Positions 23,593 through 59,090 of a DNA stretch of 64,000 nt are shown one piece after another (the first letter of the stretch is position 1; each line of letters begins with the position of its first letter). The position numbers were made by a program, and so were the translations under genes. The stretch is from Octopus sinensis (Eukaryota), in contig NC_043023.1 in the NCBI RefSeq assembly GCF_006345805.1, forward strand, positions 15,624,001 through 15,688,000. The letters are read 5' to 3'. The notes under the pieces were generated by a model. It worked only from the letters and a program-made list of their open reading frames with translations, was not told where the DNA came from and did not search any database.

Positions 23593-24821
<1,229 letters not shown>

Positions 24822-30320: not shown

Positions 30321-31225
<905 letters not shown>

Positions 31226-36498: not shown

Positions 36499-37754
36499 CT
36501 CTTGAGGATTCTTTATTGTTCTATAGTATACAAGCACAAAATATATTTTTGCCCCCTTTTTTATATATTTCTTTGTATATTCAAATACTTCTACTAATAT
36601 ATTTCCAGCAAATCTGGTCTTCATCAATATCTGGACATGATACAAACACCTTCGGAGATTTTTCCAAGTTAAAGCAGAAGGTCAAATACTTGTGTAAATA
36701 TTCCAGGCAATGAGGAAAACAAATGTTGATATTAATTCAGAAGAGATATTTCACAGTTCTTCACCATAGATAAATTATATAAACGTGGTTATATATATTA
36801 TTTATAACATCTTCCATTAGTCTTCAAATGATGATCAATATTCATGATGTATCTGATGTAAAAACTCCTTTATACCACTAACATCTCATATTCTGAAATG
36901 ACACAGAAACAGTAGAAGATATAGGAAAGACTTAAAAAGCAGAGATTCAACAATAGAAAATATAATTACATTTTCATAATGATAAACTGTTTATATAAAC
37001 TTTTACCCATTCAAATTTTATTATACAACCTTTGTGTAATGTCTACTTATACACAGACTGCAGCTCCTCCACCTTCAGATATTATGGAAAATGTTAAACT
37101 ACAAAACGGTGGACAATAATATTCTACTATCTTCAGAAACGTGGTAAGTCACTGTTGTTTAGCCCAAGGTCACCCCTGACTGAGCAGACCTCTTAATGAA
37201 ATTCGCTTGCATTCCCGACTGTCCTGACTTTTAGAATACATCAAACATAAACACAACTATAATTTAAACACCAACCCACCACGACTTTTCCTTCTGTAAC
37301 CTTATTAATAATGTAAATCTTTTAAAGAAATTCTGCATTCACATGTGTTGAAGGTCTGGATCATAAATACGTTTGTGTATTCGTTTCTTTTCAAGTTTAA
37401 GCCATTTGCTGATTCTGTCTACAAAAAGGTGTATCTTGTTTTATCATCGCGGTACCACTGGCCTCATGTTGCAGTCAGCTATTTCTGTTTTATTAGATTG
37501 CAGATTATTCACAGGAGCAAAAATCAGACATAATTAACGTGGATTATTTCGACAGGAACAGCAAATATAGATGTTTAGCAAATAATACCGCTATGATAAA
37601 TCAATAGATGGCTTTGAATCGACACAGTCAGCAAATGGAATATCTACTGTAATAAAAAAAAAGCTAAAAATTTGGTGCTTTTTCATGGCCATGCCAAGTA
37701 AAATCCAAATATTCTTGGCTTAATTAAAGACATTTATTGGCGAATAGAATTAAC

Positions 37755-38992
37755 GGTTAAACTAAAGCGTTACACCATTCAAAGAAACAAGAAAAAATAT
37801 GAACGAATATGAAAAAAAAATGCGCACATGCGAAAGGGGAGTGGGGGAGAGGCCTCGGAAAATTCACATCGAGAATTTCCGAAAGCGTCTGAGGGGCTGA
37901 CCCGGGCACCAAAACAACAAAAAAAAAAATAGTGTAATATGTGTAAAACAACTTGCTCTCAACGAATATGACAAAAAAAATGCGCCCTCGCCAAAGAGGG
38001 GTGGGGGAGAAGCCTCGGAAAATTTACATCGGGAATTTCCGAAACCGTCTGACCCGGGCACAAAACAAAAATAGCGTAATAGGTGTAAAACAACTTGCTC
38101 TAAACGAATATGATAAAAAAAAATACGCGCTCGCGAAAGAGGGGTGGGGGAGAGGCTTCGGAAATTTCACATCTTCAGTCCACGGCCTTTAAACTAAGAA
38201 AAAATAGTGTAATTGGTGTAAAACTACTTGTTCTAAACGAGTATCAAGAACACACACTCACACATGAATCATAAACTCCGTATTTTTGTACATATTTCGC
38301 AAAAAAAAAAAAAAAAAAAAAAAGAAAAGAAATTCTGGAAAAAGTGAAGAAATGTTGGATCTCCGCCATATGAATCAAAATACGTGTCAGAAACATCTTG
38401 AAATACTACAGAAATTATGTTACGAAAATGATAATGTATACATACCTCTTTGAGTGGTCCATCGACATTGATGATAAAGAAATGAGATGGGTTGGAGGAA
38501 AAAATTATCTCGGGCCAGGATAAAGACTTGCTGCTGCCAATAAGAATACGTGTATTCTCTTGGCAGCAGGTTTGATGCTTTCCATAAATAGGAACTTGGA
38601 GAGGTATTGCTTTAAGTAACAGGCACGAATGCCTGGGCGAAAAACTGATCTCTTAACTGACCCCCACAATCTCTCTATCGTCTGTGTGTGCACCGACGCA
38701 TTTGTCAGATCAACAAAATTTTCACTGCGGTTGATGCCTTATAATTTAGCACACTCATCGGTAAAATTTTGCAGTTATTTCTTACTTATTTCCTTTTTTC
38801 CTAAAATTTTCTTTGCGTCTTGCAACCTTTTCAATAGTTTTGACTCTGTCCGTTATTTACACTGCTTTTCCTTTTGTTTGTTTGGGTGCATTGAAACTAA
38901 ACTAGAGAAAGTATTAGATTTATGACTCAGGTCATTATAGACGAAAGTAATGTCTTGTGTCATGAGTATCATTTTAAAGTGTAATTTCTTCG
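37755..38992 (-). mobile_element. Merlin/IS1595-type DNA transposon remnant (terminus, subterminal repeats, transposase C-terminus)
   Basis: NHSENFVDLTNASVHTQTIERLWGSVKR matches the ISXO2/IS1595 DDE motif. The terminus GGTTAAACTAAAG at 37755 is preceded by GAATTAAC. Three G-rich subterminal repeats at about 37815, 37978 and 38122. Confidence 0.75.
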
Positions 38993-39439
38993 GGTAAAAG
39001 TTTATATCCACAGTTTATCATTATGAAAATGTAGTTATAATTTTTATTGTTAAACCTTTGCTTTTTAAAGTCTTATATCTTCTTCTGTTTCTGTGTCATT
39101 TCAGATACTCGTATAAAGGAGTTTTACGTGAGATACATCATGAATATTGATCATGTTTTGAAAACGAATGTCAGCCGTTATAAATAATAGATAATAACTC
39201 TGTTTATATAATATATCTATGGTGAATAACGGTGAAATATTTCTTCTGAATTAATAGCAACATTTGTTTTCCTCATTGCCAGGAATATTTACAAAAGTAT
39301 TTCACATTCAGTTTGAATGTGAGAAAATCTGGAAAGGTGTTTGTATCATTTTCAGATATTCAAGATCAGATTTGCTGTAGAAGATATATATAAAGAAGAA
39401 GGGAAAATATATTTTCTGTCTGTATACTATAGAACAATA

Positions 39440-40482
39440 ATGAATAGTCTGGAGATGTTAAAAGAAAGAGAAAAGTTATCAGACCAATGTGATATCTGTA
39501 AAAAGACTTTTTCTAATAAGGGAAATCTCACTGTTCACAAATGTATTGATCCAGGTGGAAAGAAATATTACTGTGATATTTGTGGTAAATCATTCTCTCG
39601 AAAAAGTCACCTTATCATCACAAATACACTCATACTGGAGAGAAACCACATCACTGTGATATCTGTGGTAAATCATTCTCTAAAAAATATAACCTTACTA
39701 AACACAAAGCCATTCATACAGGAGAGAAACCATATCACTGTGATATTTGCGGTAAATCATTCTGTCATGCGAGAAGCCTTGATTCTCACAAACACATTCA
39801 TACAGGAGAGAAACCACATCACTGCGATATTTGTGGTAAATCATTCTCTCAAAAAAGTAGCCTTTATTCTCACAAATACATTCATACAGGTGAGAAACCA
39901 TATCGGTGTGATATTTGTGGTAAATCATTCTCTCAAAGAAGTCGCCTTACTTCTCACAATTCCGTTCATACTGGAGAGAAACCATATCATTGTGATATTT
40001 GTGGTAAATCATTTTCATCAAAAAGTCACCTTACTAGACACAAATACATTCATACAGGAGAGAAACGATATCACTGTGATATCTGTGATAAATCATTCTC
40101 TTACTTGAGCCTTTTAAATTCTCATAAATCCATTCATACAGGAGAGAAACCATATCACTGTGATAAATCTTTTTCATCAAAAAGTCATTTAACTACTCAC
40201 GAACTCACTCATGCTCATGAGAGGCCATATCCCTGTGATATTTGTGGTAAATCATTCACTCAAAGGAGAGGCCTTACTTATCACAAATACACTCATACAG
40301 GAGAGAAACCATATAAATGTGATATTTGTGGTAAATCATTCTCTCAAAAAGGTCACCTTACATATCACAAATCAGTTCATACAGGTGAGAAACCATATCG
40401 GTGCTATATCTGTGGTAAATCATTCTCTCAAAAAAGGTACTTAAATGGACACAAATGCATTAATACAGGGGACAAACCATAG
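39440..40482 (+). pseudogene. ZNF-5, 12 finger repeats, frameshift in finger 2
   Basis: 1-nt deletion at 39614 (cttatcatcac versus cttactcatcac in ZNF-6). Finger 1 has H to D, finger 9 has lost a Cys through a 9-nt deletion, and the last finger has H to N. Confidence 0.85.
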
Positions 40483-41432
40483 CACTGTAGTATCTGCAGT
40501 AAATTATTCCGTTTAAGAAAATATTTAATTAATTACAAGTCTGCTCATACTGGAGAGAAACTATGTGACTGTGATGTCTGCAGCAAATCATTCTATTGTG
40601 AATATGCTGTATATACTTATAAACGTATTCATACAGGAGAGAAACTCTATTGCTGTGATACCTGAGGTAAATCATTCTCTGTGGAACAATATTGAACTCA
40701 TCACAAATACATTCATACAGGAGAGAAATCATATCACTGTGACATCTGTGACAAGTCATTCTTTCATAGAGAGAAATAATAAACTAAACACAAACATATT
40801 CATACAGGGTAAGATTCTGATGACTGTGTAATCTGTGCTAAATCATTCTCTCAATAATTTACATTAACTAAACATATACTTATTCATATTGATCAATAAC
40901 AATATCAATGATAAAACAGATGTCCTGCTGAATAAAATACTGCAAATGTATTACTTTTTACAAAATAAATTCATTTTTCACATTTTCCTCATTTGCATCA
41001 ACTCACTAATTACGATGTGTGTTTTTTATTCAAACAATATTGATTATATTAATTTGCTCTGTTTTCTTGAGGATATATTATTTTGACACAAATGTATTAC
41101 ACTCCAGTTCCCAGCCATGATCAGTTATCCTCTGCTGGACACACTCAGGGATCCCAGGATCTGCACCCTTTGTGCTACTGCCCACATATTCTGGCACTAG
41201 CTGGAGGCTTATTGCTGTTTGTCACAGTTTTGGGTGCAGAGTGGGAAATATTTTTCAAGAGCCTAATGCCCCACTCTACCTATGGTTCAAGCACATCCCC
41301 GCTCAACCCATGCAAGTGATTATCATCATACTTATTTTTTGCTAAATCATTCTGTAGAGCAGGTTTTCATGGTCTTGTTCTTACCAGACACCAAGCAGGG
41401 ATTTGTGATGGGCATCTGGTTAGAATGGCACC

Positions 41433-41670
41433 TGTTGTGATGAGAGTTACCATGTCCCCTTGTGAGAGATAGACTGGTTCGAGTTAAGTATAAATAGTAA
41501 CGATCTGAGTGGGTTCGCGGTTCAGAGTCAAGTGAAGTCAGAAGGTGTCGCTTGGTTTACTTCCTAAGGAATATTGAATGTTGGTTCTTAAAAGATTTGT
41601 TAGTTCATTAGATTGTTGTTACAATTTTCTGGTTATCTTATTTATTGTACGGAACAATTATGTCACAACA
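41433..41670 (+). mobile_element. LTR (238 bp) of a Gypsy-type element
   Basis: TGTTGTGA...TCACAACA inverted termini, followed by PBS-like TGGCGATGAGG at 41673. Confidence 0.75.
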
Positions 41671-42490
41671 TCTGGCGATGAGGGTTTCGAAGCTCTTGCA
41701 GGTCAGTTAACAAATTTTTGTGATACAAAATTGTTAAATCATGGAAGACTAATTAGCTTCTATAAAACTGTTGCAAAATCAACGACAAAGGCAACAACAA
41801 CAACAATTATTGGAGCTTTATTCAAAGAAGTCCAAAAATAAGGGAAGTACATTTTTGCCAGACGACATTTTGGACTCTATGAATTCAGTTATAACCCAGA
41901 GGACGGTATAACTGTTGCATTGTACTACAGCAGGTAATTTTTAAGGATGATTGTAAGACATGGTCAGACACAGAAAAAGTAAGGTTATTATGATATAAAT
42001 GAGCCCCATCTGAGTATGAACATTACTTTAATTTCATATTACCCAAAAAAACTCAATGAAATTTGTTTTAAAGAAACAATGGAATTACTGTCTAACATAT
42101 TCGGTGATAAAACTTCTCTAACACTTGGATGGTGTTTTGGAATATAATGAAAAAAGAGGATGGTGATTTTATCACATACACAGGAACAATTGACAGGATG
42201 TGTGAATATTTTAAACTCAAGAAGTTACACCTGAGATGTTCAGGTGTCTTATTTTGGTAAAAGGCCTTACAACAACTGAAAATACAGAAATTCACACTGC
42301 AGAACTAAATTCTGAAGATCAACCATTAAAGATCCTAGAGGGCTCTCAAAAGAAACAAAATTCGACTCCCAAATAAGAAAATTTGTACACGTAAAAATGA
42401 TTGGAATAAATATTAAACTTCAGTTCGATACTGGAAGTGATATTTCAATAATAAATATGGATACATGGAAGAAAATAGGGGAACCTGTCT
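41671..42490 (+). pseudogene. Degenerate Gypsy gag and aspartic protease
   Basis: EFSYNPEDGIT...DTEKVRLL...FNFILPKK...IFGDKTSL; MFRCLILVKGL; KLQFDTGSDISIIN. Many stops. Confidence 0.7.
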
Positions 42491-42494
42491 ATCT

Positions 42495-42843
42495 TACATG
42501 TTTCAGGCATTTGACAGTGGCCATGCTGGAGCACCGCCTTTAGTTGAGCAAATAGACCCAGGACTTATTCTATTGGTCTCTTTTGTCGAACCGCTAATGA
42601 CGGGGATATAAGCACCTCAGCATCGGTTGTCAAGCAATGCTAGGGGGACAAACACAGACACACAAACATACATATATACGATGGGCTTCTTTCAGTTTCC
42701 GTCTACCAAATCCACTCACAAGGCTTTGGTCGGCCCGAGGCTATAGTAGAAGACACTTGTCCAAAGTGCTACACAGTGAGACTGAACCTGGGACCATGTG
42801 GTTGGTAAGCAAGCTACATACCACACAGCCACTCCTGCGCCTA
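42495..42843 (-). mobile_element. SINE family A
   Basis: Mirror of 52632-52980. Confidence 0.8.
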
Positions 42844-43196
42844 TATGTACACATTACACAAGATATTGTTTGCTTTTTTCTCTGTTGTCTGTATTAAAGA
42901 AATATTTTCAAATTATTTCACTTTAATAGAATTTATTATTTCTTTAGCTTGTATTAAATAATTTTGACCTCATAACTCATTAAAATAATTGCATTATCTT
43001 TTTAACTTATCTCTCTGCTTTTATATATTATGTTGGGTGTGTAGGCATGTATAAATATATATATATAGAGAGAGATTTTAAAAGTGTCCCGAATATATGG
43101 TTTTCTAATTTGGCAACCCTATCCAAATGTGTCCCTTATGAGCCTATACAATTGATGATACAGCATAGAATTCACACTCGATCAATGTATGATAAA

Positions 43197-46100
43197 AGTT
43201 AGTTAGTTAGTTAGTTAGTTAGTTAATTTGGCTCAAAAGCAAATAGCAAGGCCATGTAGGGGGATATGGAGTTAAGTACAGGGTGGTGTTCATGTAAAGA
43301 GTTCAGGCCACTTGAGGTCCAGGGAGGCTTTGAACAAAGCGGTCGTCGGCATCTTCACCATCTCGTCTGGCAGCTTGTTCCACGGATCCGCAACCCGGAC
43401 GGAGAAAGCTCCTCTCCTTCGATTGAGATGAAATCGTCGCAGGTAGAGCTTTTCGGAATGACCCCGCAGCCGACGCTCCGGAGCAGGAGTGAAGAACAGC
43501 TCTTTCGAGAGGTTACACTTCCCGCTTATGATGTTGTGGGCGAGAATGAGATCACCACAGCGGCGGCGTTTTTCAAGAGAATAAAGGTCGAGCATCCTCA
43601 GCCTTTCTTCGTAGGACAAATTTTTGAGACCATGAACCAGGCGGGTAGCCAGCCTCTGGACTCTTTCGAGGTGCTGTATGTCTTTGAGGAGATAAGGAGA
43701 AGAGGCTTGAATCCCATACTCCAATATGGGTCTCACCAGCGTGACATAGAGTGGCAGGAATATGGCTGCTGTGAGCATTCCGAATGACCGTCGAATCAAA
43801 AACAGAATTCCGCGCGCTTTGTTGGCAGCATGGACGCACTGGGCCGAAGGCGAAAAGGAGGAATCCACCAAGATACCCAGGTCCTTTACCTGATCGGTCC
43901 TCTCCAGCAGCAGACGACCCGGCTCGAAATCAAGTTGAGTTGCAGGAGTGCAGATGACAGCACTTTGACACGTTCAGACACAGGTCCCAATCGTTAGACC
44001 ACTTCCAAATTTGGTGGAGGCATCGACGAAGATCCTCTATACTACCGCGAGGAGCGACCAGTTTGATATCGTCGGCAAATAGAAGGGTGTGTTGCGTGAG
44101 GTCGTCGGGCAAGTCATTTATGAAGACTAAGAACAACAAGGGCCCAAGCACTGAACCTTGAGGCACGCCACTGCTCGCACTGGAGACGTCGGACCGTGAA
44201 CCATTAACTTGAACTTGGAAGGAGCGATCTGAGAGGAAGGCACCAACCCATCGTACAATATCCGGATGGAAACTATATGCCTGAAGCTTGACAAGTAGTA
44301 GGCGGTGGTTTACCGAGTCAACAGCTTTGGCAAAGTCCAATAAAACGATGTCAACAGCATCACTATCATCGAGGATGCGCGTCACCAATTCTTCCATTAC
44401 TAGTAAGTTGGTCAAGCATGATCTCTTCGGCACGAAGCCATGTTGGGAATCAGTGATCGAGGCTGTGCTTAGGAGGTGGAGCATCATACTTTTCTTAAGG
44501 ATGGTTTCGAACATCTTGCTGATTATTGATGTAAGGGAAACCGGTCGGTAGTTAAGCGGGTCTTCGCGGCTCCTTTCTTGAAAATTGGGCAGATTATCGC
44601 TGTTCTCCAGTCTGCAGGTATAACACCCGTCGCCAATGACATATTGAATAGTCGTGTTAAGGGCTCGCAGATGACCGGAGCCAACGCTTTGATAACCCAT
44701 GGGTGTATGCCGTCAGGGCCGTGACCCTTGTTGACATCGAGGCCTTGAATAACACGTTTGACTTGGTCCCGCGTGATGATCAATCGAAGCATTGGAGGTA
44801 CCGATCTATCAAATGGAGGGGATTCACGACCATCATCTTGTTTGAAAATAGTTGAAAAAGCCTCGGCAAATAATTGACTCTGTTGATAAGGGTCCTCAAT
44901 CGATACGCCTGTTGAGTCTACCAATGTTGCAATCTGGTTGTTCAAGCGGGAATTCCGCTGGACATGGGCAAAGAAGGTTTTTGGATTGCTACTGGCATTT
45001 GCCGCGATTTTGTATTCATAACTGAAGCGTTCTTTTTTTTCAATTTTCACGGCTCGGTCTCGTTGAGTTTTGTACACCTCAAAAGCTGCAGTCGAATCCA
45101 GATTTTTGAATTCAGCCCAAGCAATATCTCTGAGTCGACGTTCTCGTTTAACCTTCTTCGTCACCCAGGGCTTGTGTTTCTTCCTCTTGGGAAGTCCAAC
45201 GGGAACTGCCTGGTCAGTGAAACAGATTACATATGCTTTGAGGGATGACCATAGTTCGTCTACTGAGGACAACGTCATCAGGGAACGCCAGTCCAGAAGC
45301 ACGGAAGCCTCGGTTAGAATTTCAAGATTAATTGCAGAGAAGACTCTACGTGGCAGCGAAGTAATCGTGGGCGTGGAAAAAGTTGTGTGCATGACGAACT
45401 TCAGGACCGCATGATCACTCTTGGCAAGAGGGGCGCACAGATACGTCTGACACTGATCTTGGATAGCGGGAGAATACCAGATCTAGCATAGATGGCTGCT
45501 GCCCAGACCGATGCCTTGTCGGATATTCAACATGTTGCGATAGAAAACAATCTTCAGCCACGTCAAGAAGGGCCTGGCCGAACCGGGAAGATGTTGTACA
45601 AATTGATGCGGGCCAATCGATCGTGGGAGCGTTGAAGTCGCCTAGTACCAAGCAGTCATGCGAAGCTGAAACGAATCTTATCGCCTCGAGTAGATGAGCA
45701 TCGTCCTGGGGGTCGGCTAGAGGCGGCCTGTAGACAGCCAACACGGGCAGGCAAAACTCAGATAGGCTCAGCTTGCAATAGACGGCATCGAATTTGGTTG
45801 TAGGTTGAGCATTTGTGGGTAGAATACCGCAGGACGGTTTGTGCTCAGACTTAACATACACAGCAACACCTCCACCTCGCCTTTTTCCTCTGTCACATCT
45901 GAAAAGGACGTAGCCCTGCAGGTGGATCTCTGAGTCCTTTACTGCTGGAGTCAGCCAAGTCTCGGTGATAGCTATCACATCAGGGGAGTCGCGTAGGGCC
46001 AGTGTAAATAGTTCACTGAACTTTGGGAATAAGGAGCACGAGTTGGTGTAGACGATGCTGAGCTGTGAAGTCTGAGGGGCGGGAGTTGGGGAACAAGCAG

Positions 46101-47831
46101 AATAAAGGGCATCAGAGATAGCATCGTTGACGGGGGTATCAACTTCACTTCGATTTGCCTTCACATCACTTTCCCTGTCAGCACTACAGCATGGGACCAG
46201 AGGTAGGACTTGATTATCTGTCCATCTTGGATTCGTAAACCCTTCTCTCCCATTGTTTCCTCATCTTTAGTCGGATATCAGGTTCCTCCGGCGAATTCTC
46301 TCTCTTAGTGAGTATTCCTCGCGAAAACCCATATTGGGGTCCTCCCAGGCATGCGTCTGAGCTCTGTTCAGAAAGACTGAAGCCTCCCGATCACAAGAAA
46401 AGATTACCCTTATTGGGCGTGGTCTAGTATCTGCGGTTGGGTTCGCTTGGAATCTTCCTAGCCGAGCGACCTTAAGAAACACTGACATTTTCGTTCACAG
46501 AGAACAATTTTCCAACCAAAATAGAAACAAAATTAATGTCATCTTTTAGGCGGTTTTGCCTGTATCACAGGTGGATTCAGCTTTGCCATATATTATTGCC
46601 GATCTTGAGTGGGCCAAAAAGTTCTCTACTATGAGCCGCGGTATTCGATTCTTCATTGGAGGATTTCGAAAGGGTGGTTTCATAGCCATCAGACTTATGT
46701 CGGCCTGTGGGGTCGATCGGAATGGATTTAGTGGTCATAATTTCCCGCCTGGTTTGAAACTGCACTGCCTCTTCTTTGGTTTGGGGGAGCACCACTCCCC
46801 AGATGACCCACATCGAGATCGTTCAGAATTGGTTGAGCAATGGCATTAATGGGAAGGACAAGTGAAGGAGAATCCAAACAGATTTTATCGTGATCAGGTT
46901 TCATAGCCAAATCTGCCCCTCTGGAGTTTTGACTACGTTTCTTCTTTTTGGGGAGAACAACGGTCTTCAGGTGGGTTTGGGTCTACGCTCCTCGAACTAG
47001 GTTGGGGAACCTCCGGGACCGAAAAGGCAGATGAGGAAGAATCTGCACAGGAACGATCATGTGCAGGAACGACCGCCGGTTCCTTCGCCTTCTTTGGCCG
47101 CTTCGATTTTGTTCCCTTCGGTTTGGACGTCTCCAGGGAAGAAATCAAGGGTGACTCTGCGTCAAACAGGAGACCGTTATCGTGGTCAGGTTTCATAGCT
47201 AAATCCGCCCCACTGGAGTTTTGACGACGTTTCTTCTTTTGGGGGAGAACAACGGTCTTCAGGTGGGTTTGAGTCTACGCTCCTCAAATTAGGTTGGGAA
47301 ACCTCCGGGACCGAAAAGGCAGATGGGGAAGAATCCGCACGGGAACGATCATGTGCAGAAACGACCCACGGTTCCTTCGCCTTCTTTGGCCGCCTCGATT
47401 TGTTCCCTTCGGTTGGATGTCTCCAGGGAAGAGATCAAGGGTGACTCTGCGTCAACAGGAGACTGTTTATTCAGTAAGAGAGCAACAACAGACTTTAGGT
47501 GCTCAACCTCTTGTTTGAGCAACAGCAATGTTCGTTGAGCTGGATATTGGTAGGACCAATCTTGATGAGAAGCCCTACTTGCAGATCTCAGTTTCGATGC
47601 GTAGGTAGCTGACATGATGGATGGTTGACTAAAAACAATCTTCTATGGGCTCTAGGACAAATCGGGGTTAAATCAGGAACAAAAAACAGGTGCAATCCTT
47701 GTAGGAGTAGGCAACAGCAGACAAAAACTGAGAGAGTTTGGGCTGAGCCGAATCACAATCCAAGATTGAAAGCAGACGGTGCTTGAGAGTCGGGAACCCT
47801 TCCTAATTGTCTGAAGCAGCTTTAGGATTAA
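43197..47831 (-). mobile_element. CR1-type LINE (ORF1 plus APE-RT ORF2), frameshifted, 5' end runs into the gap
   Basis: IAITETWL, LGDFNAP, PGPDG-like HGPDGIH, QHGFVPKRSC, LDFAKA, GVPQGSVLGP, FADD, LSYEERLR motifs; (TAAC)n tail; ORF1 ATG at 47615. Confidence 0.9.
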
Positions 47832-47931
47832 NNNNNNNNNNNNNNNNNNNNNNNNNNNNNNNNNNNNNNNNNNNNNNNNNNNNNNNNNNNNNNNNNNNNN
47901 NNNNNNNNNNNNNNNNNNNNNNNNNNNNNNN
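47832..47931. other. Assembly gap, 100 N
   Basis: Run of exactly 100 N, a typical placeholder for a gap of unknown size. Confidence 0.98.
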
Positions 47932-50900
47932 ACCAATAGTCAGCTCAACGAACAGTTGCTGTTGCTCAAACAAGAGGTTGAGCACCTAAAGTCTGTTGTT
48001 GCTCTCTTACTGAATAAACAGTCTCCTGTTGACGCAGAGTCACCCTTGATCTCTTCCCTGGAGACGTCCAAACCGAAGGGAACAAAATCGAGGCGGCCAA
48101 AGAAGGCGAAGGAACCGGCGGTCGTTTCTGCACATGATCGTTCCCGTGCGGATTCTTCCTCATCTGCCTTTTCGGTCCCGGAGGTTCCCCAACCTAATTT
48201 GAGGAGCGTAGACTCAAACCCACCTGAAGACTGTTGTTCTCCCCAAAAGAAGAAACGTCGTCAAAACTCCAGTGGGGCGGATTTAGCTATGAAACCTGAC
48301 CACGATAAACGGTCTCCTGTTGACGCAGAGTCACCCTTGATTTCTTCCCTGGAGACGTCCAAGCCAAAGGGAACAAAATCGAAGCGGCCAAAGAAGGCGA
48401 AGGAACCGGCGGTCGTTCTTGCACATGATCATTCCTGTGCGGATTCTTCCTCATCTGCCTTTTCGGTCCCGGAGGTTCCCCAACCTAGTTCGAGGAGCGT
48501 AGACCCAAACCCACCTGAAGACCGTTGTTCTCCCCAAAAGAAGAAACGTAGTCAAAACTCCAGAGGGGCAGATTTGGCTATGAAACCTGATCACGATAAA
48601 ATCTGTTTGGATTCTCCTTCACTTGTCCTTCCCATTAATGCCATTGCTCAACCAATTCTGAACGATCTCGATGTGGGTTCATCTGGGGAGTGGTGCTCCC
48701 CCAAACCGAAGAAGAGGCAGTGCAGTTCCAAACCAGGCGGGAAAATTATGACCACTAAATCCATTCCGATTGACCCCACAGGCCGACATAAGTCCGATGG
48801 CTATGAAACCACCCTTTCGAAATCCTCCAATGAAGAATCGAATACCGCGGCTCATAGTAGAGAACTTTTTGCCCACTCAAGATCGGCAATAATATATGGC
48901 AAAGCTGAATCCACCTGTGATACAGGCATAAACCGCCTAAAAGATGACATTAATTTTGTTTCTATTTTGGTTGGAAAATTGTTCTCTGTGAACGAAAATG
49001 TCAGTGTATTTAAGGTCGCTCGGCTAGGAAGATTCCAAGCGAATCCAACCGCAGATACTAGACCACGCCCAATAAGGGTAATCTTTTCTTGTGATCGGGA
49101 GGCTTCAGTCTTTCTGAACAGAGCTCAGACGCATGCCTGGGAGGACCCCAATATGGGTTTTCGCGAGGAATACTCACTAAGAGAGAGAATTCGCCGGAGG
49201 AACCTGATATCCGAGCTAAAGATGAGGAAACAAATGGGAGAGAAGGGTTTACGAATCCAAGATGGACAGATAATCAAGTCCTACCTCTGGTCCCATGCTG
49301 TAGTGCTGACAGGGAAAGTGATGTGAGGGCAAATCGAAGTGAAGTTGATACCCCCGTCAACGATGCTATCTCTGATGCCCTTTATTCTGCTTGTTCCCCA
49401 ACTCCCGCCCCTCAGACTTCACAGCTCAGCATCGTCTACACCAACTCGTGCTCCTTATTCCCAAAGTTCAGTGAACTATTTACACTGGCCCTACGCGACT
49501 CCCCTGATGTGATAGCTATCACCGAGACTTGGCTGACTCCAGCAGTAAAGGACTCAAGAGATCCACCTGCAGGGCTACGTCCTTTTCAGATGTGACAGAG
49601 GAAAAAGGCGAGGTGGAGGTGTTGCTGTGTATGTTAAGTCTGAGCACAAACCGTCCTGCGGTATTCTACCCACAAATGCTCAACCTACAACCAAATTCGA
49701 TGCCGTCTATTGCAAGCTGAGCCTATCTGAGTTTTGCCTGCCCGTGTTGGCTGTCTACAGGCCGCCTCTAGCCGACCCCCAGGACGATGCTCATCTACTC
49801 GAGGCGATAAGATTCGTTTCAGCTTCGCATGACTGCTTGGTACTAGGCGACTTCAATGCTCCCACGATCGATTGGCCCGCATCAATTTGTACAACATCTT
49901 CCCGGTTCGGCCAGGCCCTTCTTGACGTGGCTGAAGATTGTTTTCTATCGCAACATGTTGAATATCCGACAAGGCATCGGTCTGGGCAGCAGCCATCTAT
50001 GCTAGATCTGGTATTCTCCCGCTATCCAAGATCAGTGTCAGATGTATCTGTGTGCGCCCCTCTTGCCAAGAGTGATCATGCGGTCCTGAAGTTCGTCATG
50101 CACACAACTTTTTCCACGCCCACGATTACTTCGCTGCCACGTAGAGTCTTCTCTGCAATTAATCTTGAAATTCTAACCGAGGCTTCCGCGCTTCTGGACT
50201 GGCGTTCCCTGATGATGTTGTCCTCAGTAGACGAACTATGGTCATCCCTCAAAGCATATGTAATCTGTTTGACTGACCAGGCAGTTCCCGTTGGACTTCC
50301 CAAGAGGAAGAAACACAAGCCCTGGGTGACGAAGAAGGTTAAACGAGAACGTCGACTCAGAGATATTGCTTGGGCTGAATTCAAAAATCTGGATTCGACT
50401 GCAGCTTTTGAGGTGTACAAAACTCAACGAGACCGAGCCGTGAAAATTGAAAAAAAAGAACGCTTCAGTTATGAATACAAAATCGCGGCAAATGCCAGTA
50501 GCAATCCAAAAACCTTCTTTGCCCATGTCCAGCGGAATTCCCGCTTGAACAACCAGATTGCAACATTGGTAGACTCAACAGGCGTATCGATTGAGGACCC
50601 TTATCAACAGAGTCAATTATTTGCCGAGGCTTTTTCAACTATTTTCAAACAAGATGATGGTCGTGAACCCCCTCCATTTGATAGATCGGTACCTCCAATG
50701 CTTCGATTGATCATCATGCGGGACCAAGTCAAACGTGTTATTCAAGGCCTCAATGTCAACAAGGGTCACGGCCCTGATGGCATACACCCACGGGTTATCA
50801 AAGCGTTGGCTCCGGTCATCTGCGAGCCCTTAACACGACTATTCAATATGTCATTGGTGACGGGTGTTATACCTGCAGACTGAAGAACAGCGATAATCTG

Positions 50901-52280
50901 CCCAATTTTCAAGAAAAGGAGCCGCGAAGACCCGCTTAACTACCGACCGGTTTCCCTTACATCAATAATCAGCAAGATGTTCGAAACCATCCTTAAGAAA
51001 AGTATGATGCTCCACCTCCTAAGCACAGCCTCAATCACTGATTCCCAACACGGCTTCGTGCCGAAGAGATCATGCTTGACCAACTTACTAGTAATGGAAG
51101 AATTGGTGACGCGCATCCTCGATGATAGTGATGCTGTTGACATCGTTTTATTGGACTTTGCCAAAGCTTTTGACTCGGTAAACCACTGCCTACTACTTGT
51201 CAAGCTTCAGGCATATAGTTTCCATCCGGATATTGTACGATGGGTTGGTGCCTTCCTCTCAGATCGCTCCTTCCAAGTTCAAGTTAATGGTTCGCGGTCC
51301 GATGTCTCCAGTGCAAGCAGTGGCGTGCCTCAAGGTTCAGTGCTTGGGCCCTTGTTGTTCTTAGTCTTCATAAATGACTTGCCCGACGACCTCATGCAAC
51401 ACACCCTTCTATTTGCCGACGATATCAAACTGGTCGCTCCTCGCGGTAGTATAGAGGATCTTCGTCGATGCCTCCACCAAATTTGGAAGTGGTCTAACGA
51501 TTGGGACCTGTGTCTGAACGTGTCAAAGTGCTGTCATCTGCACTCCTGCAACTGAACTTGATTTCGAGCCGGGTCGTCTGCTGCTGGAGAGGACCGATCA
51601 GGTAAAGGACCTGGGTATCTTGTTGGATTCGTCCTTTTCGCCTTCGGCCCAGTGCGTCCATGCTGCCAACAAAGCGCGCAGAATTCTGTTTTTGATTCGA
51701 CGGTCATTCGGAATGCTCACAGCAGCCATATTCCTGCCACTCTATGTCACGCTGGTGAGACCCATATTGGAGTATGGGATTCAAGCCTCTTCTCCTTATC
51801 TCCTCAAAGACATACAGCACCTCGAAAGAGTCCAGAGGCTGGCTACCCGCCTGGTTCATGGTCTCAAAAATTTGTCCTACGAAGAAAGGCTGAGGACGCT
51901 CGACCTTTATTCTCTTGAAAAACGCCGCCGCCGTGGTGATCTCATTCTCGCCCACAACATCATAAGCGGGAAGTGTAACCTCTCGAAAGAGCTGTTCTTC
52001 ACTCCTGCTCCGGGGTCATTCCGAAAAGCTCTACCTGCGACGATTTCATCTCAATCGAAGGAGAGGAGCTTTCTCCGTCCGGGTTGCGGATCCGTGGAAC
52101 AAGCAGCCAGACGAGATGGTGAAGATGCCGACGACCGCTTTGTTCAAAGCCTCCCTGGACCTCAAGTGGCCTGAACTCTTTACATGAACACCACCCTGTA
52201 CTTAACTCCATATCCCCCTACATGGCCTTGCTATTTGCTTTTGAGCCAAATTAACTAACTAACTAACTAACTAACTAACT
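47932..52280 (+). mobile_element. CR1-type LINE, mirror copy
   Basis: ORF1 47956..49326 and ORF2 pieces 49323..52174; tail (TAAC)n at 52252-52280; same insertion flank as the left copy. Confidence 0.9.
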
Positions 52281-52980: not shown

Positions 52981-52984
52981 AAAT

Positions 52985-54026
52985 AGACAGGTTCCCCTAT
53001 TTTCTTCCATGTATCCATATTTATTATTGAAATATCACTTCCAGTATCGAACTGAAGTTTAATATTTATTCCAATCATTTTTATGTGTACAAATTTTCTT
53101 ATTTGGGAGTCGAATTTTGTTTCTTTTGAGAGCCCTCTAGGATCTTTAATGGTTGATCTTCAGAATTTAGTTCTGCAGTGTGAATTTCTGTATTTTCAGT
53201 TGTTGTAAGGCCTTTTACCAAAATAAGACACCTGAACATCTCAGGTGTAACTTCTTGAGTTTAAAATATTCATACATCCTGTCAATTGTTCCTGTGTATG
53301 TGATAAAATCACCATCCTCTTTTTTCATTATATTCCAAAACACCATCCAAGTGTTAGAGAAGTTTTATCACCGAATATGTTAGACAGTAATTCCATTGTT
53401 TCTTTAAAACAAATTTCATTGAGTTTTTTTGGGTAATATGAAATTAAAGTAATGTTCATACTCAGATGGGGCTCATTTATGTCATAATAACCTTACTTTT
53501 TCTGTGTCTGACCATGTCTTACAATCATCCTTAAAAATTACCTGCTGTAGTACAATGCAACAGTTATACCGTCCTCTGGGTTATAACTGAATTCATAGAG
53601 TCCAAAATGTACTTCCCTTATTTTTGGACTTCTTTGAATAAAGCTCCAATAATTGTTGTTGTTGTTGCCTTTGTCGTTGATTTTGCAACAGTTTTATAGA
53701 AGCTAATTAGTCTTCCATGATTTAACAATTTTGTATCACAAAAATTTGTTAACTGACCTGCAAGAGCTTCGAAACCCTCATCGCCAGATGTTGTAACATA
53801 ATTGTTCCGTACAATAAATAAGATAACCAGAAAATTGTAACAACAATCTAATGAACTAACAAATCTTTTAAGAACCAACATTCAATATTCCTTAGGAAGT
53901 AAACCAAGCGACACCTTCCGACTTCACTTGACTCTGAACCGCGAACCCACTCAGATCGTTACTATTTATACTTAACTCGAACCAGTCTATCTCTCACAAG
54001 GGGACATGGTAACTCTCATCACAACA
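52985..54026 (-). mobile_element. Gypsy LTR (53789-54026) plus gag-protease remnant, mirror copy
   Basis: Reverse complement of 41433-42490. Confidence 0.72.
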
Positions 54027-54682
54027 GGTGCCATTCTAACCAGATGCCCATCATAAATCCCTGCTTGGTGTCTGGTAAGAACAAAACCATGAAAACCTGC
54101 TCTACAGAATGATTTAGCAAAAAATAAGTATGATGATAATCCCTTGCATGGGTTGAGCGGGGATGTGCTTGAACCATAGGTAGAGTGGGGCATTAGGCTC
54201 TTGAAAAATATTTCCCTCTCTACACCCAAAACTGTAACAAACAGCAATAAGCCTCCAGCTAGTGCCAGAATATGTGGGCAGTAGCACAAAGGGTGCAGAT
54301 CCTGGGATCCCTGAGTGTGCCCAGCAGAGGATAACTGATCATGGCTGGGAACTGGAGTGTAATACATTTGTGTCAAAATAATATATCCACAAGAAAATAG
54401 AGCAAATTAATATAATCAATATTGTTTGAATAAAAAACACACATCGTAATTAGTGAGTTGATGCAAATGAGGAAAATGTGAAAAATGAATTTATTTTGTA
54501 AAAAGTAATACATTTGCAGTATTTTATTCAGCAGGACATCTGTTTTATCATTGATATTGTTATTGATCAATATGAATAAGTATATGTTTAGTTAAGGTAG
54601 ATTATTGAGAGAATGATTTAGCACAGATTACACAGTCATAAGAATCTTCTCCTGTATGAATATGTTTGTGTTTAGTTTATTA

Positions 54683-54793
<111 letters not shown>

Positions 54794-54967
54794 TCAGGTA
54801 TCACAGCAATCGAGTTTCTCTCCTGTATGAATACGTTTATAAGTATATACAGCATATTCACAATAGAATGATTTGCTGCAGACATCACAGTCACATAGTT
54901 TCTCTCCAGTATGAGCAGACTTGTAATTAATTAAATAATTTCTTAAACGGAATAATTTACTGCAGTG

Positions 54968-56356
54968 CTATGGTTTGTCCCCTGTATTAATGCATTTGTG
55001 TCCATTTAAGTACCTTTTTTGAGAGAATGATTTACCACAGATATAGCACCGATATGGTTTCTCACCTGTATGAACTGATTTGTGATATGTAAGGTGACCT
55101 TTTTGAGAGAATGATTTACCACAAATATCACATTTATATGGTTTCTCTCCTGTATGAGTGTATTTGTGATAAGTAAGGCCTCTCCTTCGAATGAACGATT
55201 TACCACAAATATCACAGGGATATGGCCTCTCATGAGCATGAATGAGTTCGTGAGTAGTTAAATGACTTTTTGATGAAAAGGATTCATCACAGATATCACA
55301 CTGATATGGTTTCTCACCTGTATGAACTGATTTGTGAGTAGTAAGGTTACATTTTTGAGAGAATGATTTACCACAAATATCGCAGTGATGTGGCTTCTCA
55401 CGTGTATGTCCACGTTTGTGAGTAGTTAAATGACTTTTTAATGAAAAAGATTTATCACAGATATCACACTGATATTGTTTCTCACCTGTATGAACTGATT
55501 TGTGATAAGTAAGGTGACCTTTTTGAGAGAATGATTTACCACAAATATCACATTTATATGGTTTCTCTCCTGTATGAGTGTATTTGTGATAAGTAAGGCC
55601 GTTCCTTCGAGTGAATGATTTACCACAAATATCACAGGGATATGGCCTCTCATGAGCATGAGGGAGTTTGTGAGTAGTTAAATGACTTTTTGATGAAAAA
55701 GATTTATCACAGATATCACAGTGATATCGTTTCTCTCCTGTATGAATGTATTTGTGTCTAGTAAGGTGACTTTTTGATGAAAATGATTTACCACAAATAT
55801 CACACTGATATGGTTTCTCTCCAGTATGAACGGAATTGTGAGAAGTAAGGCGACTTCTTTGAGAGAATGATTTACCACAAATATCACACCGATATGGTTT
55901 CTCACCTGTATGAATGTATTTGTGAGAATAAAGGCTACTTTTTTGAGAGAATGATTTACCACAAACATCACACTGATGTGGTTTCTCTCCTGTATGAATG
56001 TGTTTGTGAGAATCAAGGCTACTCGCATGACAGAATGATTTACCGCAAATATCACAGTGATATGGTTTCTCTCCTGTATGAATGGCTTTGTGTTTAGTAA
56101 GGTTATATTTTTTAGAGAATGATTTACCACAGATATCACAGTGATATGGTTTCTCTCCAGTATGAGTGTATTTGTGATGAGTAAGGTGACTTTTTTGAGA
56201 GAATGATTTACCACAGATATCACAATGATATTGTTTCCCCCCTGCATGAATGAATTTGTGAACAGTGAGATGTCCCTTATTAGAAAAAGTCTTTTTACAG
56301 ATATCACATTGGTCTGATAACTTTTCTCTTTCTTTTAACATCTCCAGACTACTCAT
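54968..56356 (-). CDS. C2H2 zinc-finger protein ZNF-6, 16 finger repeats, intact ORF
   Basis: 462 aa = 14 + 16 x 28; the last repeat has the second His replaced by Asn. Confidence 0.93.
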
Positions 56357-56804
56357 TATTGTTCTGTAGTATACAGACAGAAAATATATTTTCCCTTTCT
56401 TCTTTATATATATCTTCTACAGCAAATCTGATCTTGAATATCTGAAAATGATACAAACACCTTTCCAGATTTTCTCACATTCAAACTGAATGTGAAATAC
56501 TTTTGTAAATATTCCTGGCAATGAGGAAAACAAATGTTGCTATTAATTCAGAAGAAATATTTCACCGTTATTCACCAGAGATATATTATATAAACAGAGT
56601 TATTATCTATTATTTATAACGGCTGACATTCGTTTTTAAAACATGATCAATATTCATGATGTATCTCACGTAAAACTCCTTTATACGAGTATCTGAAATG
56701 ACACAGAAACAGTAGAAGATATAAGACTTTAAAAAGCAAAGGTTTAACAATAAAAATTATAACTACATTTTCATAATGATAAACTGTGGATATAAACTGT
56801 TGCC

Positions 56805-57900
56805 CGAAGAAATTACACTTTAAAATGATACTCATGACACAAGACATTACTTTCGTCTATAATGACCTGAGTCATAAATCTAATACTTTCTCTAGTTTAG
56901 TTTCAATGCACCCAAACAAACAAAAGGAAAAGCTGTGTAAATAACGGACAGAGTCAAAACTATTGAAAAGGTTGCAAGACGCAAAGAAAATTTTAGGAAA
57001 AAAGTAAATAAGTAAGAAATAACTGCAAAATTTTACCGATGAGTGTGTTAAGTTATAAGGCATCAACCACAGTGAAAATTTTGTTGATCCGACAAATGCG
57101 TCGGTGCACATACAGACGATAGAGAGATTGTGGGGGTCAGTTAAGAGATCAGTTGTTCGCCCAGGCATTCGTGCCTGTTACTTAAAGCAATACCTCTCCA
57201 AGTTCCTATTTATGGAAAGCATCAAACCTGCTGCCAAGAGAATACACGTATTCTTATTGGCAGCAGCAAGTCTTTATCCTGGCCCGAGATAATTTTTTCC
57301 TCCAACCCATCTCATTTCTTTATCATCACTGTCGATGGACCACTCAAAGAGGTATGTATACATTATCATTTTCGTAACATAATTTCTGTAGTATTTCAAG
57401 ATGTTTCTGACACGTATTTTGATTCATATGGCGGAGATCCAACATTTCTTCACTTTTTCCAGAATTTCTTTTCTTTTTTTTTTTTTTTTTTGCGAAATAT
57501 GTACTAAAATACGGAGTTTATGATTCATGTGTGAGTGTGTGTTCTTGATACTCGTTCAGAACACGTAGTTTTACACCAATTACACTATTTTTTCTTAGTT
57601 TAAAGACCGTGGACTGAAGGTGTAAATTTTCCGAGGCTTCTCCCCCACCCCCCTTTCGCGAGTGCGCATTTTGTTAGTCATATTCGTTTAGAGCAAGTTG
57701 TTTTACACATATTACACTATTTTTTTTTTTTTGTTTTGGTGCCCGGGTCAGCCCCTCAGACGCTTTCGGAAATTCCCGATGTGAATTCTCCGAGGCCTCT
57801 CCCCCACTCCCCTTTCGCGTGCGCGCATTTTTTTTTATCATATTCGTTCAGAGGAAGTTGTTTTTTGTTTCTTTGAATGGTGTAACGCTTTAGTTTAACC
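56805..57900 (+). mobile_element. Merlin/IS1595-type remnant, mirror copy
   Basis: GINHSENFVDPTNASVHIQTIERLWGSVKR; ends ctttagtttaacc at 57900, followed by gttaattc. Confidence 0.75.
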
Positions 57901-58581
57901 GTTAATTCTATTCGCCAATAAATGTCTTTAATTAAGCCAAGAAATTTGGATTTTACTTGGCATGGCCATGAAAAAGCACCAAATTTTTAGCTTTTTTTTT
58001 TATTACAGTAGATATTCCATTTGCTGACTGTGTCGATTCAAAGCCGTCTATTGATTTATCATAGAGGTATTATTTGCTAAACATCTATATTTGCTGTTCC
58101 TGTCGAAATAATCCACGTTAATTACGTCTGATTTTTGCTCCTGTGAATAATCTGCAATCTAATAAAACAGAAATAGCTGACTGCAACATGAGGCCAGTGG
58201 TACCGCGATGATAAAACAAGATACACCTTTTCGTAGACAGAATCAGCAAATGGCTTAAACTTGAAAAGAAACGAATACACAAACGTATTTATGATCCAGA
58301 CCTTCAACACATGTGAATGCAGAATTTCTTTAAAAGATTTACATTATTAATAAGGTTACAGAAGGAAAAGTCGTGGTGGGTTAGTGTTTAAATTATACTT
58401 GTTTGATGTATTCTAAAAGTCAGGACAGTCGGGAACACAAGCGAACTTCATTAAGAGGTCTGCTCAGTCAGGGGTGACCATGGGCTAAACAACAGTGACT
58501 TGCCACGTTTCTGAAGATAGTAGAATATTATTGTCCACCGTTTTGTAGTTTAACATTTCCCATAATATCTGAAGGTGGAGG

Positions 58582-58698
58582 GGTTAAACTAAAGCGTTAC
58601 ACCATTCAAAGAAACAAAAAAAAAAATGTGTGTAATAGGTGTAACACAAGCCAATGTGGTTAGCCATGGATGGCTTCTAAACTTCCTTTAGTTTAACC
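58582..58698. mobile_element. 117-bp two-ended deletion derivative of the Merlin-like element
   Basis: GGTTAAACTAAAG at 58582 and CTTTAGTTTAACC ending at 58698 (13-bp TIR), then GAATTAAC. Confidence 0.7.
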
Positions 58699-59090
58699 GA
58701 ATTAACATCGATGTCAAACTAGCAACTTTTAAAACTTTTTACTTTTCTTTGGAGTTTCGAATTAGCCAGGTTAATCGGCTTCTGCTAAAAAATAAGATAT
58801 ATATTACATCTTACCTGTTTTGATAAATAGATCATATGTTACGATAATTAGATTAATGTGAATTAATGTTAATTACACAAAAGAGCAATTAACGGGAATA
58901 TAGTTTAAAGACACTTTAAAAGTCGGCATGGAAAGTCAACGAAACGAACTAAAATATCCTGATGTTGTATACCTCGTATTACTACACATTTGTCGGATGA
59001 TAAAACTGAGTTGGTAAATTTTTAATGTTTTATTATTGCTATAATTACTATTTAAAATTTTGAATTGTAAGAAAAAATCCAAATGATGAT
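58699..59090 (-). promoter_or_regulatory. ZNF-cassette promoter, exon 1 and donor (minus strand)
   Basis: Inr-like ttagttcgtttcgttgac at 58952-58935; donor cag|gtaag at 58815|58814. The intron start continues the sequence broken at 37754. Confidence 0.65.

Follow-up and report, generated by a model that had tools for sequence, protein, structure and literature searches.

A Merlin-like transposon end at the breakpoint of an inverted zinc-finger gene block: possible transposase-driven duplication or inverted haplotypes

Did the end of a DNA transposon give rise to an inverted copy of a zinc-finger (ZNF) gene, or were two haplotypes of opposite orientation assembled side by side? This question is raised by a locus in the 64,000-nucleotide stretch of DNA analysed here (the window), in which the assembly displays two inverted arms of ~10.7 kb (37066–47551 versus 58581–47932) and the right arm ends at 58581, directly abutting 58582, the first G of a third identical copy of a transposon terminus. 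A preliminary description had placed the end of the right arm and the start of a terminus at these two neighbouring bases, and both placements hold. If the palindrome is real, a DNA transposon end would have created an inverted zinc-finger gene copy, and this would be a route by which ZNF clusters could grow, or could gain inverted repeats able to seed silencing RNAs. Experiments have documented alternative transposition well for P elements and, in maize and rice, for Ac/Ds; to our knowledge, natural examples at the sequence level are few in animals, and we know of none for Merlin.

We began from the outer boundaries of the structure. On the left, the 8-bp target-site duplication (TSD) GAATTAAC (37747–37754) is followed by the terminus GGTTAAACTAAAG (T1a; 37755–37767, plus strand); on the right, the terminus CTTTAGTTTAACC (T2; 58686–58698) is followed by a second copy of GAATTAAC (58699–58706), which leads into a flank, R (58699–59139), that is collinear with paralogues. 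The termini and flanking 8-bp repeats reported at 37747–37767 and 58686–58706 are thus present exactly. Exact copies of the 13-bp terminus occur four times in the window, at 37755 (plus strand), 57888–57900 (minus strand), 58582 (plus strand) and 58686–58698 (minus strand), against an estimated chance expectation of ~0.002 in the 128 kb of both strands; at up to 2 mismatches there are eight matches, a number reached by none of 100 shuffles. The terminus at 57888–57900 is just the counterpart, in the mirror arm, of that at 37755. With 37754 placed directly before 58707, the reconstructed empty site reads ...GCGAATAGAATTAAC|ATCGATGTC..., and we aligned this to four paralogous sites (700–860 and the reverse complements of 1990–2170, 20815–20995 and 9230–9420). 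The alignment is unbroken and a single AATAGAATTAATATCGAT is found in all four, the single-copy target at the paralogous sites reading GAATTAA[T/C]; the intron that this join was said to restore is, accordingly, uninterrupted.

The terminal inverted repeats (TIRs) open with 5'-GG, exact at 4/4 ends (GGTTAAACTAAAG / CTTTAGTTTAACC), and the TSD length of 8 bp fits the 8 or 9 bp characteristic of Merlin. These features, with the TSD read against four empty sites and an IS1595/Merlin transposase remnant nearby, support the view that the ends are Merlin-like. GG termini, an 8-bp TSD, a remnant of DDE_Tnp_IS1595 type and internal tandem repeats are shared with published Merlin elements (PMC8101967). 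Unlike those elements, the locus retains 75–92 transposase residues, and its TIR is perfect over 13 bp, after which the sequences diverge, below the published range of 24–462 bp (PMC8101967); because just one copy has two ends, the limit of an imperfect TIR cannot be set.

The left terminus belongs to a truncated Merlin copy (fM; 37755–38790, plus strand) made up of T1a, three tandem units of 143–160 bp each (~37800–38255) and the C-terminal part of a transposase, with an inner limit that falls within 38790–38970. The transposase remnant comprises the last 75–92 codons on the minus strand (38514–38789), 0.76–1.03 kb inside the left end. A library search returned E-values down to 2e-23 (best single-stretch match, 4e-16). 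The library matches are proteins of 300–340 aa that carry PF12762 above its cut-off, and the remnant is homologous to their C-terminus, covering residues ~243–325 of 329 by tblastn; taken alone, it scores 15.7 bits against PF12762 (DDE_Tnp_IS1595), under the Pfam cut-off of 27. Its closest named relatives are from sea slugs. What had been described as an IS1595/ISXO2 transposase fragment attached to the terminus proves to be this C-terminal IS1595/Merlin remnant, lying in fM on the minus strand. The window contains no transposase N-terminal sequence, no intact transposase and no autonomous copy, and a search for further members of the family beyond the locus found none, leaving one locus only.

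Two further pieces of Merlin sequence lie on the right. The mirror copy of fM (57008–57900, minus strand) holds the same remnant (57008–57283), two tandem units and the terminus at 57888–57900. Beyond it stands a two-ended, MITE-like remnant of 117 bp (58582–58698, plus strand), which runs from T1b (58582–58594) to T2 and whose first 36 bases are identical in T1b and T1a. The flanks of this 117-bp remnant do not match, reading GGTGGAGG on the left versus GAATTAAC on the right, as is expected for a moved end.

From left to right, the interval reads truncated Merlin, 5'-truncated ZNF gene, spacer, LINE, gap, the mirror image of these, and the 117-bp remnant. The left copy of the zinc-finger gene (ZNF-B; 38971–40900, plus strand) consists of the 3' part of an intron and a zinc-finger exon with a period of 84 bp. 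Homology to its paralogues begins at 38971–38995, the acceptor (...tttcag) lies at ~39105, the upstream region that the paralogues have is missing, and the frame is broken by a 1-bp deletion at 39614. The right copy (54600–56826, minus strand) carries an intact ORF of 462 aa (54968–56356) with 15 C2H2 fingers and exceeds the left copy by 336 bp, or 4 fingers. Within the window, no further ZNF-B copy exceeds 88% identity, and a donor site is likewise absent. The LINE is a near full-length non-LTR retrotransposon with APE and RT; its left copy (43197–47831, minus strand) has a 3' tail at 43197–43225 and an ORF1 ATG at ~47620 and runs to the contig end, and its right copy (47932–52280, plus strand) has an intact ORF1, which spans 456 aa and is open from where the contig begins, APE and RT at 49627–51555 and a (TAAC)n tail at 52252–52280.

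The mirror block (37066–58581) is offset from the TSD-bracketed interval (37755–58698), such that the arms take in 689 bp of flank beyond the left terminus. This flank (Lb; 37066–37754, plus strand) is upstream or intron sequence of a minus-strand gene, ZNF-A, lies outside the Merlin end and forms the outermost part of the left arm, matching 58581–57895 in reverse at 96.8%. Because the paralogue at 10795–10714 aligns across 37009–37091, the continuity of Lb with 37009–37065 is ancestral. Its inverted counterpart (Lb'; 57901–58581, minus strand) starts with GTTAATTC, which is the TSD in reverse complement, and stops at the equivalent of 37066. Of the earlier picture of some 21 kb bracketed by termini, then, the termini and the TSD stand; the interval is not an ordinary element, since it is a composite with its own flank inverted.

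At 58581|58582, the two sides have no common sequence able to cause a false overlap join, and we estimate at ~1e-4 the probability that, in 64 kb, a random breakpoint would hit any of the four termini. The coincidence of the arm boundary with a terminus fits a rearrangement that transposase may have made, and is compatible with alternative transposition of the kind seen in Ac/fAc sister-chromatid transposition of maize. Further, A'-Lb and R, on either side of the whole structure, keep the order and orientation found in the paralogues, a collinearity that a one-locus history predicts. An assembly gap of 100 N (47832–47931) sits on the axis of symmetry, homology reaching 47551 in the left arm and 47932 in the right, and the contigs on both sides stop within the same LINE. 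The left contig ends in the LINE 5' UTR and ORF1 start, with 280 bp that have no counterpart on the right; the right contig begins ~24 codons into ORF1 of the same LINE, on the opposite strand. One-base indels are 14-fold more frequent in the final 1.3 kb of the left contig, indicating that the sequence beside the gap is poor, and comparison of the contig ends revealed no link across the gap. Among the listed hallmarks of false duplications is a gap that separates the duplicated copies (PMC9516828). The arms diverge by 1.58%, patchily (0.3–3.8% per 750 bp; 162 arm-specific substitutions), and this divergence fits alleles as well as paralogues. The ZNF duplication is not secure, because its two arms come from separate contigs and the gap between these lies exactly on the axis. 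The proposal that Merlin drove a ZNF duplication is supported in part, for its Merlin-like ends and for the arm ending on a terminus.

Our preferred explanation, which we hold with somewhat less than even confidence, is a true Merlin-driven inverted duplication of the ZNF-containing block. A Merlin-superfamily transposon would have inserted in the upstream intron of the minus-strand C2H2 gene ZNF-A, duplicating the 8 bp GAATTAAC, and a later break exactly at a Merlin end would have rearranged the ZNF-A locus. After replication, transposase may have cut T1b (now at 58582) from the neighbour that is now at the centre; the severed flanks of both sister chromatids would have fused head to head; and T1b, together with T2 and the distal chromosome, would have inserted into the joined chromatid at 37065|37066, a point 689 bp beyond the other Merlin end. 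The outcome would be an inverted duplication extending from the new target at 37066 to the old donor site at the centre, with a duplicated load of the 689-bp flank, the truncated Merlin, the 5'-truncated ZNF-B, the spacer and the LINE. We infer both this order of events and the presence of the two arms on one chromosome. An excision footprint and a partner end would be expected at the centre, within the gap, and the reciprocal TSD, with a predicted target of CCTCCACC (37066–37073), would lie in the gap or on the other chromatid.

The TSD flank of T1a survives in both arms, so T1a is not the partner end; T1a and T1b face the same direction, and this duplication model requires either that another end facing that way, not visible here, lies at the centre or that both sisters contributed the same end. 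It also needs a composite progenitor, a further, unexplained step, in which host DNA of at least 10 kb, ZNF-B and the LINE included, would already have lain between TSD-sharing ends; such a progenitor could have been a composite insertion or macrotransposon with one partial and one complete Merlin border. The interval does have this composition: within the TSD GAATTAAC, ZNF-B and the LINE stand between a truncated Merlin at the left border and a two-ended remnant at the right. The junction of the truncated Merlin with ZNF-B is internal to the element and so is not a strand-transfer product, which calls for an extra, earlier event. A fuller and rather unlikely version would have Merlin go through alternative transposition twice in the germ line of an animal, by composite insertion and then by sister-chromatid doubling. 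In round one, a composite with a fractured and a complete Merlin would have brought the truncated ZNF and the LINE into a paralogous ZNF intron; in round two, sister-chromatid transposition of one Merlin end would have produced the 2 × 10.7-kb palindrome. Were this two-round reading true, it would represent transposase-driven growth of a ZNF cluster, distinct from unequal crossing-over.

A real possibility, if a somewhat doubtful one, is that an inversion polymorphism was assembled as a false duplication. Each chromosome would hold one ~10.7-kb block, in opposite orientations on the two haplotypes, and contigs kept from different haplotypes would have been scaffolded with 100 N; the rearrangement would still be Merlin-made, with no ZNF gene gained. 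The gap lies exactly between the copies, the contigs end near the same point of the LINE, the sequence at the left contig end is poor and the 1.58% divergence is patchy, all of which would follow from such a history. The nearest named relatives of the transposase being those of sea slugs, it is also relevant that molluscs are commonly very heterozygous. Known heterotype false duplications likewise share a scaffold, have copies split by a gap, which is one of the diagnostic features, and diverge to an allelic extent (PMC9516828). Unlike them, the copies here lie in inverted orientation and one of them stops at what looks like a real rearrangement junction, so a plain haplotig is insufficient and a haplotype difference in orientation is needed. 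The inversion could have originated by hybrid-element insertion, with T1b and T2 from different sisters inserting at 37065|37066, or by recombination between two inverted Merlin copies. When the two copies that occupy one site on sister chromatids transpose aberrantly, the product is an inversion flanked by copies (PMC2775673), and a hybrid-element inversion needs no unseen partner because the 117-bp element supplies its normal left and right ends. An inversion polymorphism predicts a junction of ...GCAGCTCCTCCACC followed by a Merlin end; however, the second element copy that it predicts at A'|... is absent from the assembly, a specific assembly chain is needed (contigs of opposite haplotypes kept, and a 10.7-kb inverted overlap left unpurged), and the same unexplained composite progenitor is required as for the duplication. 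If two haplotypes are indeed present, the locus would be a transposon-end-mediated inversion in a ZNF cluster and a textbook false gene gain beside a gap.

The remaining explanations carry less weight. A true inverted duplication could have arisen by break repair, with no strand transfer: after a double-strand break at T1b, produced by transposase or in some other way, the proximal end would have folded back and copied its own strand for ~10.7 kb, or a hairpin-capped end would have been replicated, either being followed by end joining to the free T1b. This would give the same mirror structure with a boundary on the terminus, would need no partner end and, as a spacer-free fold-back, is compatible with a centre hidden in the gap. 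We nonetheless consider it improbable: 58581|58582 has no microhomology, the left arm having T as its preceding base and the terminus C, a ~10.7-kb copy-back that ends by end joining at the terminal G is ad hoc, and all doubts on the reality of the duplication apply to it as well. Assembly error of another kind is a similarly poor candidate. The join across the gap rests on scaffolding, contig-end quality is low, and ZNF clusters and LINEs are difficult to assemble; yet a right contig chimeric at 58581|58582 would be unlikely to break exactly at the first base of a 13-bp terminus when nothing shared by the two sides could produce an overlap, and if unlinked paralogous loci had been scaffolded together, the match of A'-Lb and R to the order and orientation of one paralogous cassette would have to be coincidence. 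That the whole of 37755–58698 is one giant Merlin or macrotransposon inserted as now seen is highly improbable. Its outermost termini are identical and inverted, and a perfect 8-bp TSD encloses them at an empty site that the paralogues confirm, but in its present-day form such an element is contradicted by the inverted 689-bp left flank that it holds, including the TSD-terminus junction (57888–58581), because an inverted copy of the flank can only postdate the insertion. The interval also contains a host ZNF exon and a LINE.

Whether the duplication or the inversion polymorphism is correct, the 58581|58582 junction offers a precise and cheap target at the level of reads or PCR. We compared the locus with systems in which such rearrangements have been described. 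In maize, sister-chromatid transposition (SCT) products comprise an inverted duplication from target to donor, a terminus at the outer border and a central footprint, and composite insertions have partial or complete copies of the element at their borders (10.1101/2020.01.07.897926). The locus resembles the Ac/fAc SCT alleles p1-ww-id1 and p1-ww-id4 in having a cut-and-paste element with a fractured copy nearby, partial and full copies bordering the inserted DNA, an 8-bp TSD and, if the arms are taken as assembled, an inverted duplication from target to donor with a terminus exactly on its outer border. It differs in that the element is Merlin/IS1595 in an animal rather than hAT, in that the arms measure ~10.7 kb rather than 0.3–3.2 Mb, and in that no footprint, partner end or reciprocal deletion is observed and the putative duplication is read from the assembly. 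In hybrid element insertion by P elements, which has been considered as a source of Drosophila inversions, ends from sister chromatids integrate nearby to give an inversion flanked by copies, each with one old and one new flank, whereas a Galileo case has been attributed to ectopic recombination instead (PMC2775673). The family here is a different one and only one of the two breakpoint junctions predicted by hybrid element insertion is found in the assembly; the order along the right contig, ...T1a'-Lb'|T1b..T2-R, is like that of a P-element hybrid insertion.

The 8-bp TSD GAATTAAC abuts a 13-base Merlin-like terminus on the left, reading GAATTAAC|GGTTAAACTAAAG at 37747-37767 (terminus T1a, 37755-37767), and on the right, where the window reads CTTTAGTTTAACC|GAATTAAC at 58686-58706 (terminus T2, 58686-58698); both bracketing strings are exact, as the preliminary description had them. 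The whole window holds four mismatch-free copies of the terminus, at 37755 (+), 57888-57900 (-), 58582 (+; T1b, 58582-58594) and 58686-58698 (-), and no shuffle of the window reached its near-match count. Joining 37754 to 58707 gives ...GCGAATAGAATTAAC|ATCGATGTC..., and the claim that this join restores an empty site is borne out by an unbroken alignment to four paralogous sites of this cluster, which have a single AATAGAATTAATATCGAT copy apiece. An element with these two ends therefore did insert here, duplicating 8 bp.

In a self-comparison of the window, 37066-47551 matches 58581-47932 as its reverse complement. By global alignment the two arms differ at 162 of 10,282 aligned positions (1.58%) and by three larger indels, one of 143 bp (a single tandem unit in the Merlin fragment), one of 336 bp (four zinc fingers, longer in the right arm) and one of 16 bp. 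Divergence ranges from 0.3 to 3.8% per 750 bp, and a scan in such steps along the arms found no trend toward the centre, so a gradient does not separate the models considered below. The arms extend 689 bp past the 37755 terminus into the flank outside it (Lb, 37066-37754; inverted copy, 57901-58581), so that the mirror block is offset from the TSD-bracketed interval. Since the terminus at 57888-57900 lies inside the inverted arm, it merely mirrors the one at 37755.

From the outside to the centre, each arm contains the 689-bp flank, a truncated Merlin copy, a 5'-truncated C2H2 zinc-finger gene (ZNF-B), a 2.3-kb spacer and a LINE. The truncated Merlin copy includes T1a and tandem units of 143-160 bp, three in the left arm and two in the right, which were detected by a repeat search and not reported by Tandem Repeats Finder. 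A minus-strand reading frame within it (GINRSENFVDLTNASVHTQTIERLWGSVKR...) scores only 15.7 bits against PF12762 when taken alone. A first word-index search with this transposase piece returned no matches, and an exhaustive search matched it to 151 proteins; full-length relatives (300-340 aa) carry DDE_Tnp_IS1595 above the cut-off, and the match region is their C-termini. With relatives as queries, tblastn placed residues ~243-325 of 329 at 38514-38789 and 57008-57283, so that the IS1595-type transposase fragment noticed earlier proves to be a C-terminal remnant present in both arms; queries of 300-520 aa recovered no further transposase sequence in the window. Because only C-terminal residues are found, the element is truncated inside its transposase gene, at some point within 38790-38970. 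The closest named relatives are from the sea slugs Plakobranchus and Elysia (52-56% identity). GG termini, an 8-bp TSD and an IS1595-type transposase, here as a remnant, all agree with the Merlin superfamily, but the perfect inverted stretch of only 13 bp falls below the published TIR range of 24-462 bp (PMC8101967). Neither terminus sequence matched metagenome contigs. A further, 117-bp remnant (58582-58698) has both termini, with a perfect TIR of 13 bp, and shares its first 36 bases exactly with T1a. Its flanks do not match (GGTGGAGG on the left, GAATTAAC on the right), which rules it out as an ordinary insertion.

The right arm ends, as had been proposed, exactly where this remnant begins: its last base is 58581, and T1b, the third terminus, opens with its first G at 58582. 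At the opposite boundary, a paralogue (10795-10714) aligns straight over 37009-37091, including 37065|37066, which is therefore ordinary ancestral continuity. By our own arithmetic, a random breakpoint would land on a terminus with a chance of ~1e-4. There is no sequence common to both sides of 58581|58582, and the sole stretch that the two pieces share (47 bp, at the start of the ends) would link them the opposite way, so overlap-driven misassembly was rejected. Because nothing is shared at the junction and it falls on the very first base of the terminus, a false overlap join is unlikely. LINE 3' transduction, considered as a source of the right arm, was rejected since no tail repeat lies at 58581. 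A breakpoint placed precisely on a terminus marks the action of a transposase, by breakage or by strand transfer, and a Merlin end very probably made this one.

A gap of 100 Ns sits on the mirror axis. To its left, the contig breaks off in the LINE 5' UTR, ~70 codons upstream of the ORF1 ATG, and the right contig starts ~24 codons into ORF1 of the same LINE on the opposite strand. The arms lose homology at 47551 (left) and 47932 (right), leaving the left contig with a final 280 bp that have no counterpart on the right side; in a symmetric structure, at least these 280 bp and the centre would have to fall in the gap. Between the arms, single-base indels number 14 in 46250-47551 versus 47932-49250, against 7 in the remaining 9.2 kb, a 14-fold rise in density from 0.76/kb (37066-46250) to 10.8/kb over the 1.3 kb closest to the gap. 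Near the gap the LINE ORF1 is open in the right copy and not in the left. The indel rise and the one-sided reading frame suggest that the left contig ends in a poorly supported, low-quality consensus.

Our leading reading, a tentative one at somewhat less than an even chance, is a true inverted duplication driven by a Merlin end. In maize, sister-chromatid transposition involving Ac and fractured Ac fuses the sister chromatids where excision took place, and reinsertion of the ends yields one chromatid with an inverted duplication running from target to donor, the footprint central and the element on the outer border (10.1101/2020.01.07.897926). The layout here fits the same scheme, in which T1b would be the moved end and 37065|37066 the target. 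T1a is excluded on paper as the partner end because its TSD flank is unbroken in both arms, and the sister-chromatid pairs T1a + T2 and T1a + T1b give, in the same exercise, products that mismatch the left contig. Pairing T1b with T2 from sister chromatids gives an inversion between two element copies with no host DNA doubled, the same outcome as hybrid-element insertion, which leaves an inversion with an element copy on each side (PMC2775673). A true duplication, worked through in this way, would need the same end from both sisters, or a same-facing end at the centre, outside the read sequence. The outer flanks favour a true palindrome: the sequence left of and including Lb and the right flank R (58699-59139) are still arranged and oriented as in a single paralogous cassette. 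Equal arm lengths would follow automatically, and assemblies are known to break at the centres of palindromes.

An inversion polymorphism between haplotypes, assembled as a false duplication, is only slightly less probable. A gap separating the copies within one scaffold is among the listed hallmarks of false duplication (PMC9516828); the arms diverge on an allelic scale, the two contigs break off at the same point, and one of them ends in poor-quality sequence. A simple haplotig would not suffice: the contigs differ beyond 37066, so an inversion difference between haplotypes is needed, which the T1b + T2 reaction would supply. This reading alone predicts a junction in which ...GCAGCTCCTCCACC is followed directly by a Merlin end (GGTTAAACTAAAGGAAG...); it would also have a haplotype whose LINE 5' end continues into GGTTAAACTAAAGCG.... 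Duplication and inversion alike would require a progenitor ordered as Lb, T1a with the truncated Merlin, ZNF-B, LINE, T1b to T2, and R, a composite insertion or macrotransposon with at least 10 kb of host DNA already between the TSD-sharing ends. Because the truncated Merlin meets ZNF-B at a point internal to the element, that junction must stem from end joining or deletion, not strand transfer. Fold-back break repair at a cut end is improbable, as are other assembly errors. That 37755-58698 is a single giant element is less probable still, for its own outside flank recurs within it in inverted form, together with the flank-terminus junction, which rules out insertion of one 21-kb element as it stands. 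The ends and TSD of the 21-kb interval hold as first described. The proposal that Merlin drove a ZNF gene duplication stands in part: a Merlin end very probably made 58581|58582, but doubling of the gene is unproven, since the case for two copies on a single chromosome runs across the unread gap.

ZNF-B begins at 38971 with the 3' part of an intron, followed by a zinc-finger exon; the upstream region of its paralogues is missing. The right copy is an intact 462-aa ORF with 15 fingers, and the left is broken by a one-base deletion at 39614. The copies (39535-40900 and 54600-56261) differ by exactly four finger units (336 bp), only the right being intact, and their finger arrays diverge by 3.6% versus ~1% in the adjacent spacer. 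An exact look-up of ZNF-B in protein collections gave no match, and a homology search no relative above 56% identity. The LINE has endonuclease and reverse-transcriptase domains, with its 3' tail outward and its 5' end toward the centre; an ORF2 search gave no match at E<=1e-80. ORF1 carries a 291-bp tandem duplication in both arms (48014-48600; 46884-47470), and the tail is a (TAAC)n microsatellite (52252-52280 and 43197-43225).

The region 1-37000 is a C2H2 ZNF cluster of paralogues 76-88% identical, with exons at approximately 4173-6449 (+), 11560-12934 (+), 23101-24849 (+), 30325-31225 (-) and 36040-37008 (-). It includes a direct segmental duplication (1954-5940 vs 20779-24758, 88% match) and an upstream cassette in head-to-head arrangements (301-1158 vs 2163-1966). 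To the right of T2, at a distance of 750 bp, lies a foldback-type element of 2,869 bp (59456-62324). Its terminal inverted repeats, 1,288 bp long, are 99.3% identical; its first bases are GGTACTTGTC and its last CC, and an 8-bp direct repeat, GTGTTTTT, stands on either side. In its GG ends and 8-bp TSD it resembles Merlin, but its terminal sequence is unlike the GGTTAAAC family. A 381-aa ORF at 62446-63591 (+) had no Pfam match at E<=0.01; by eye it contains a CX2CX4HX4C zinc-knuckle motif, and it is probably a retroelement gag/ORF1.
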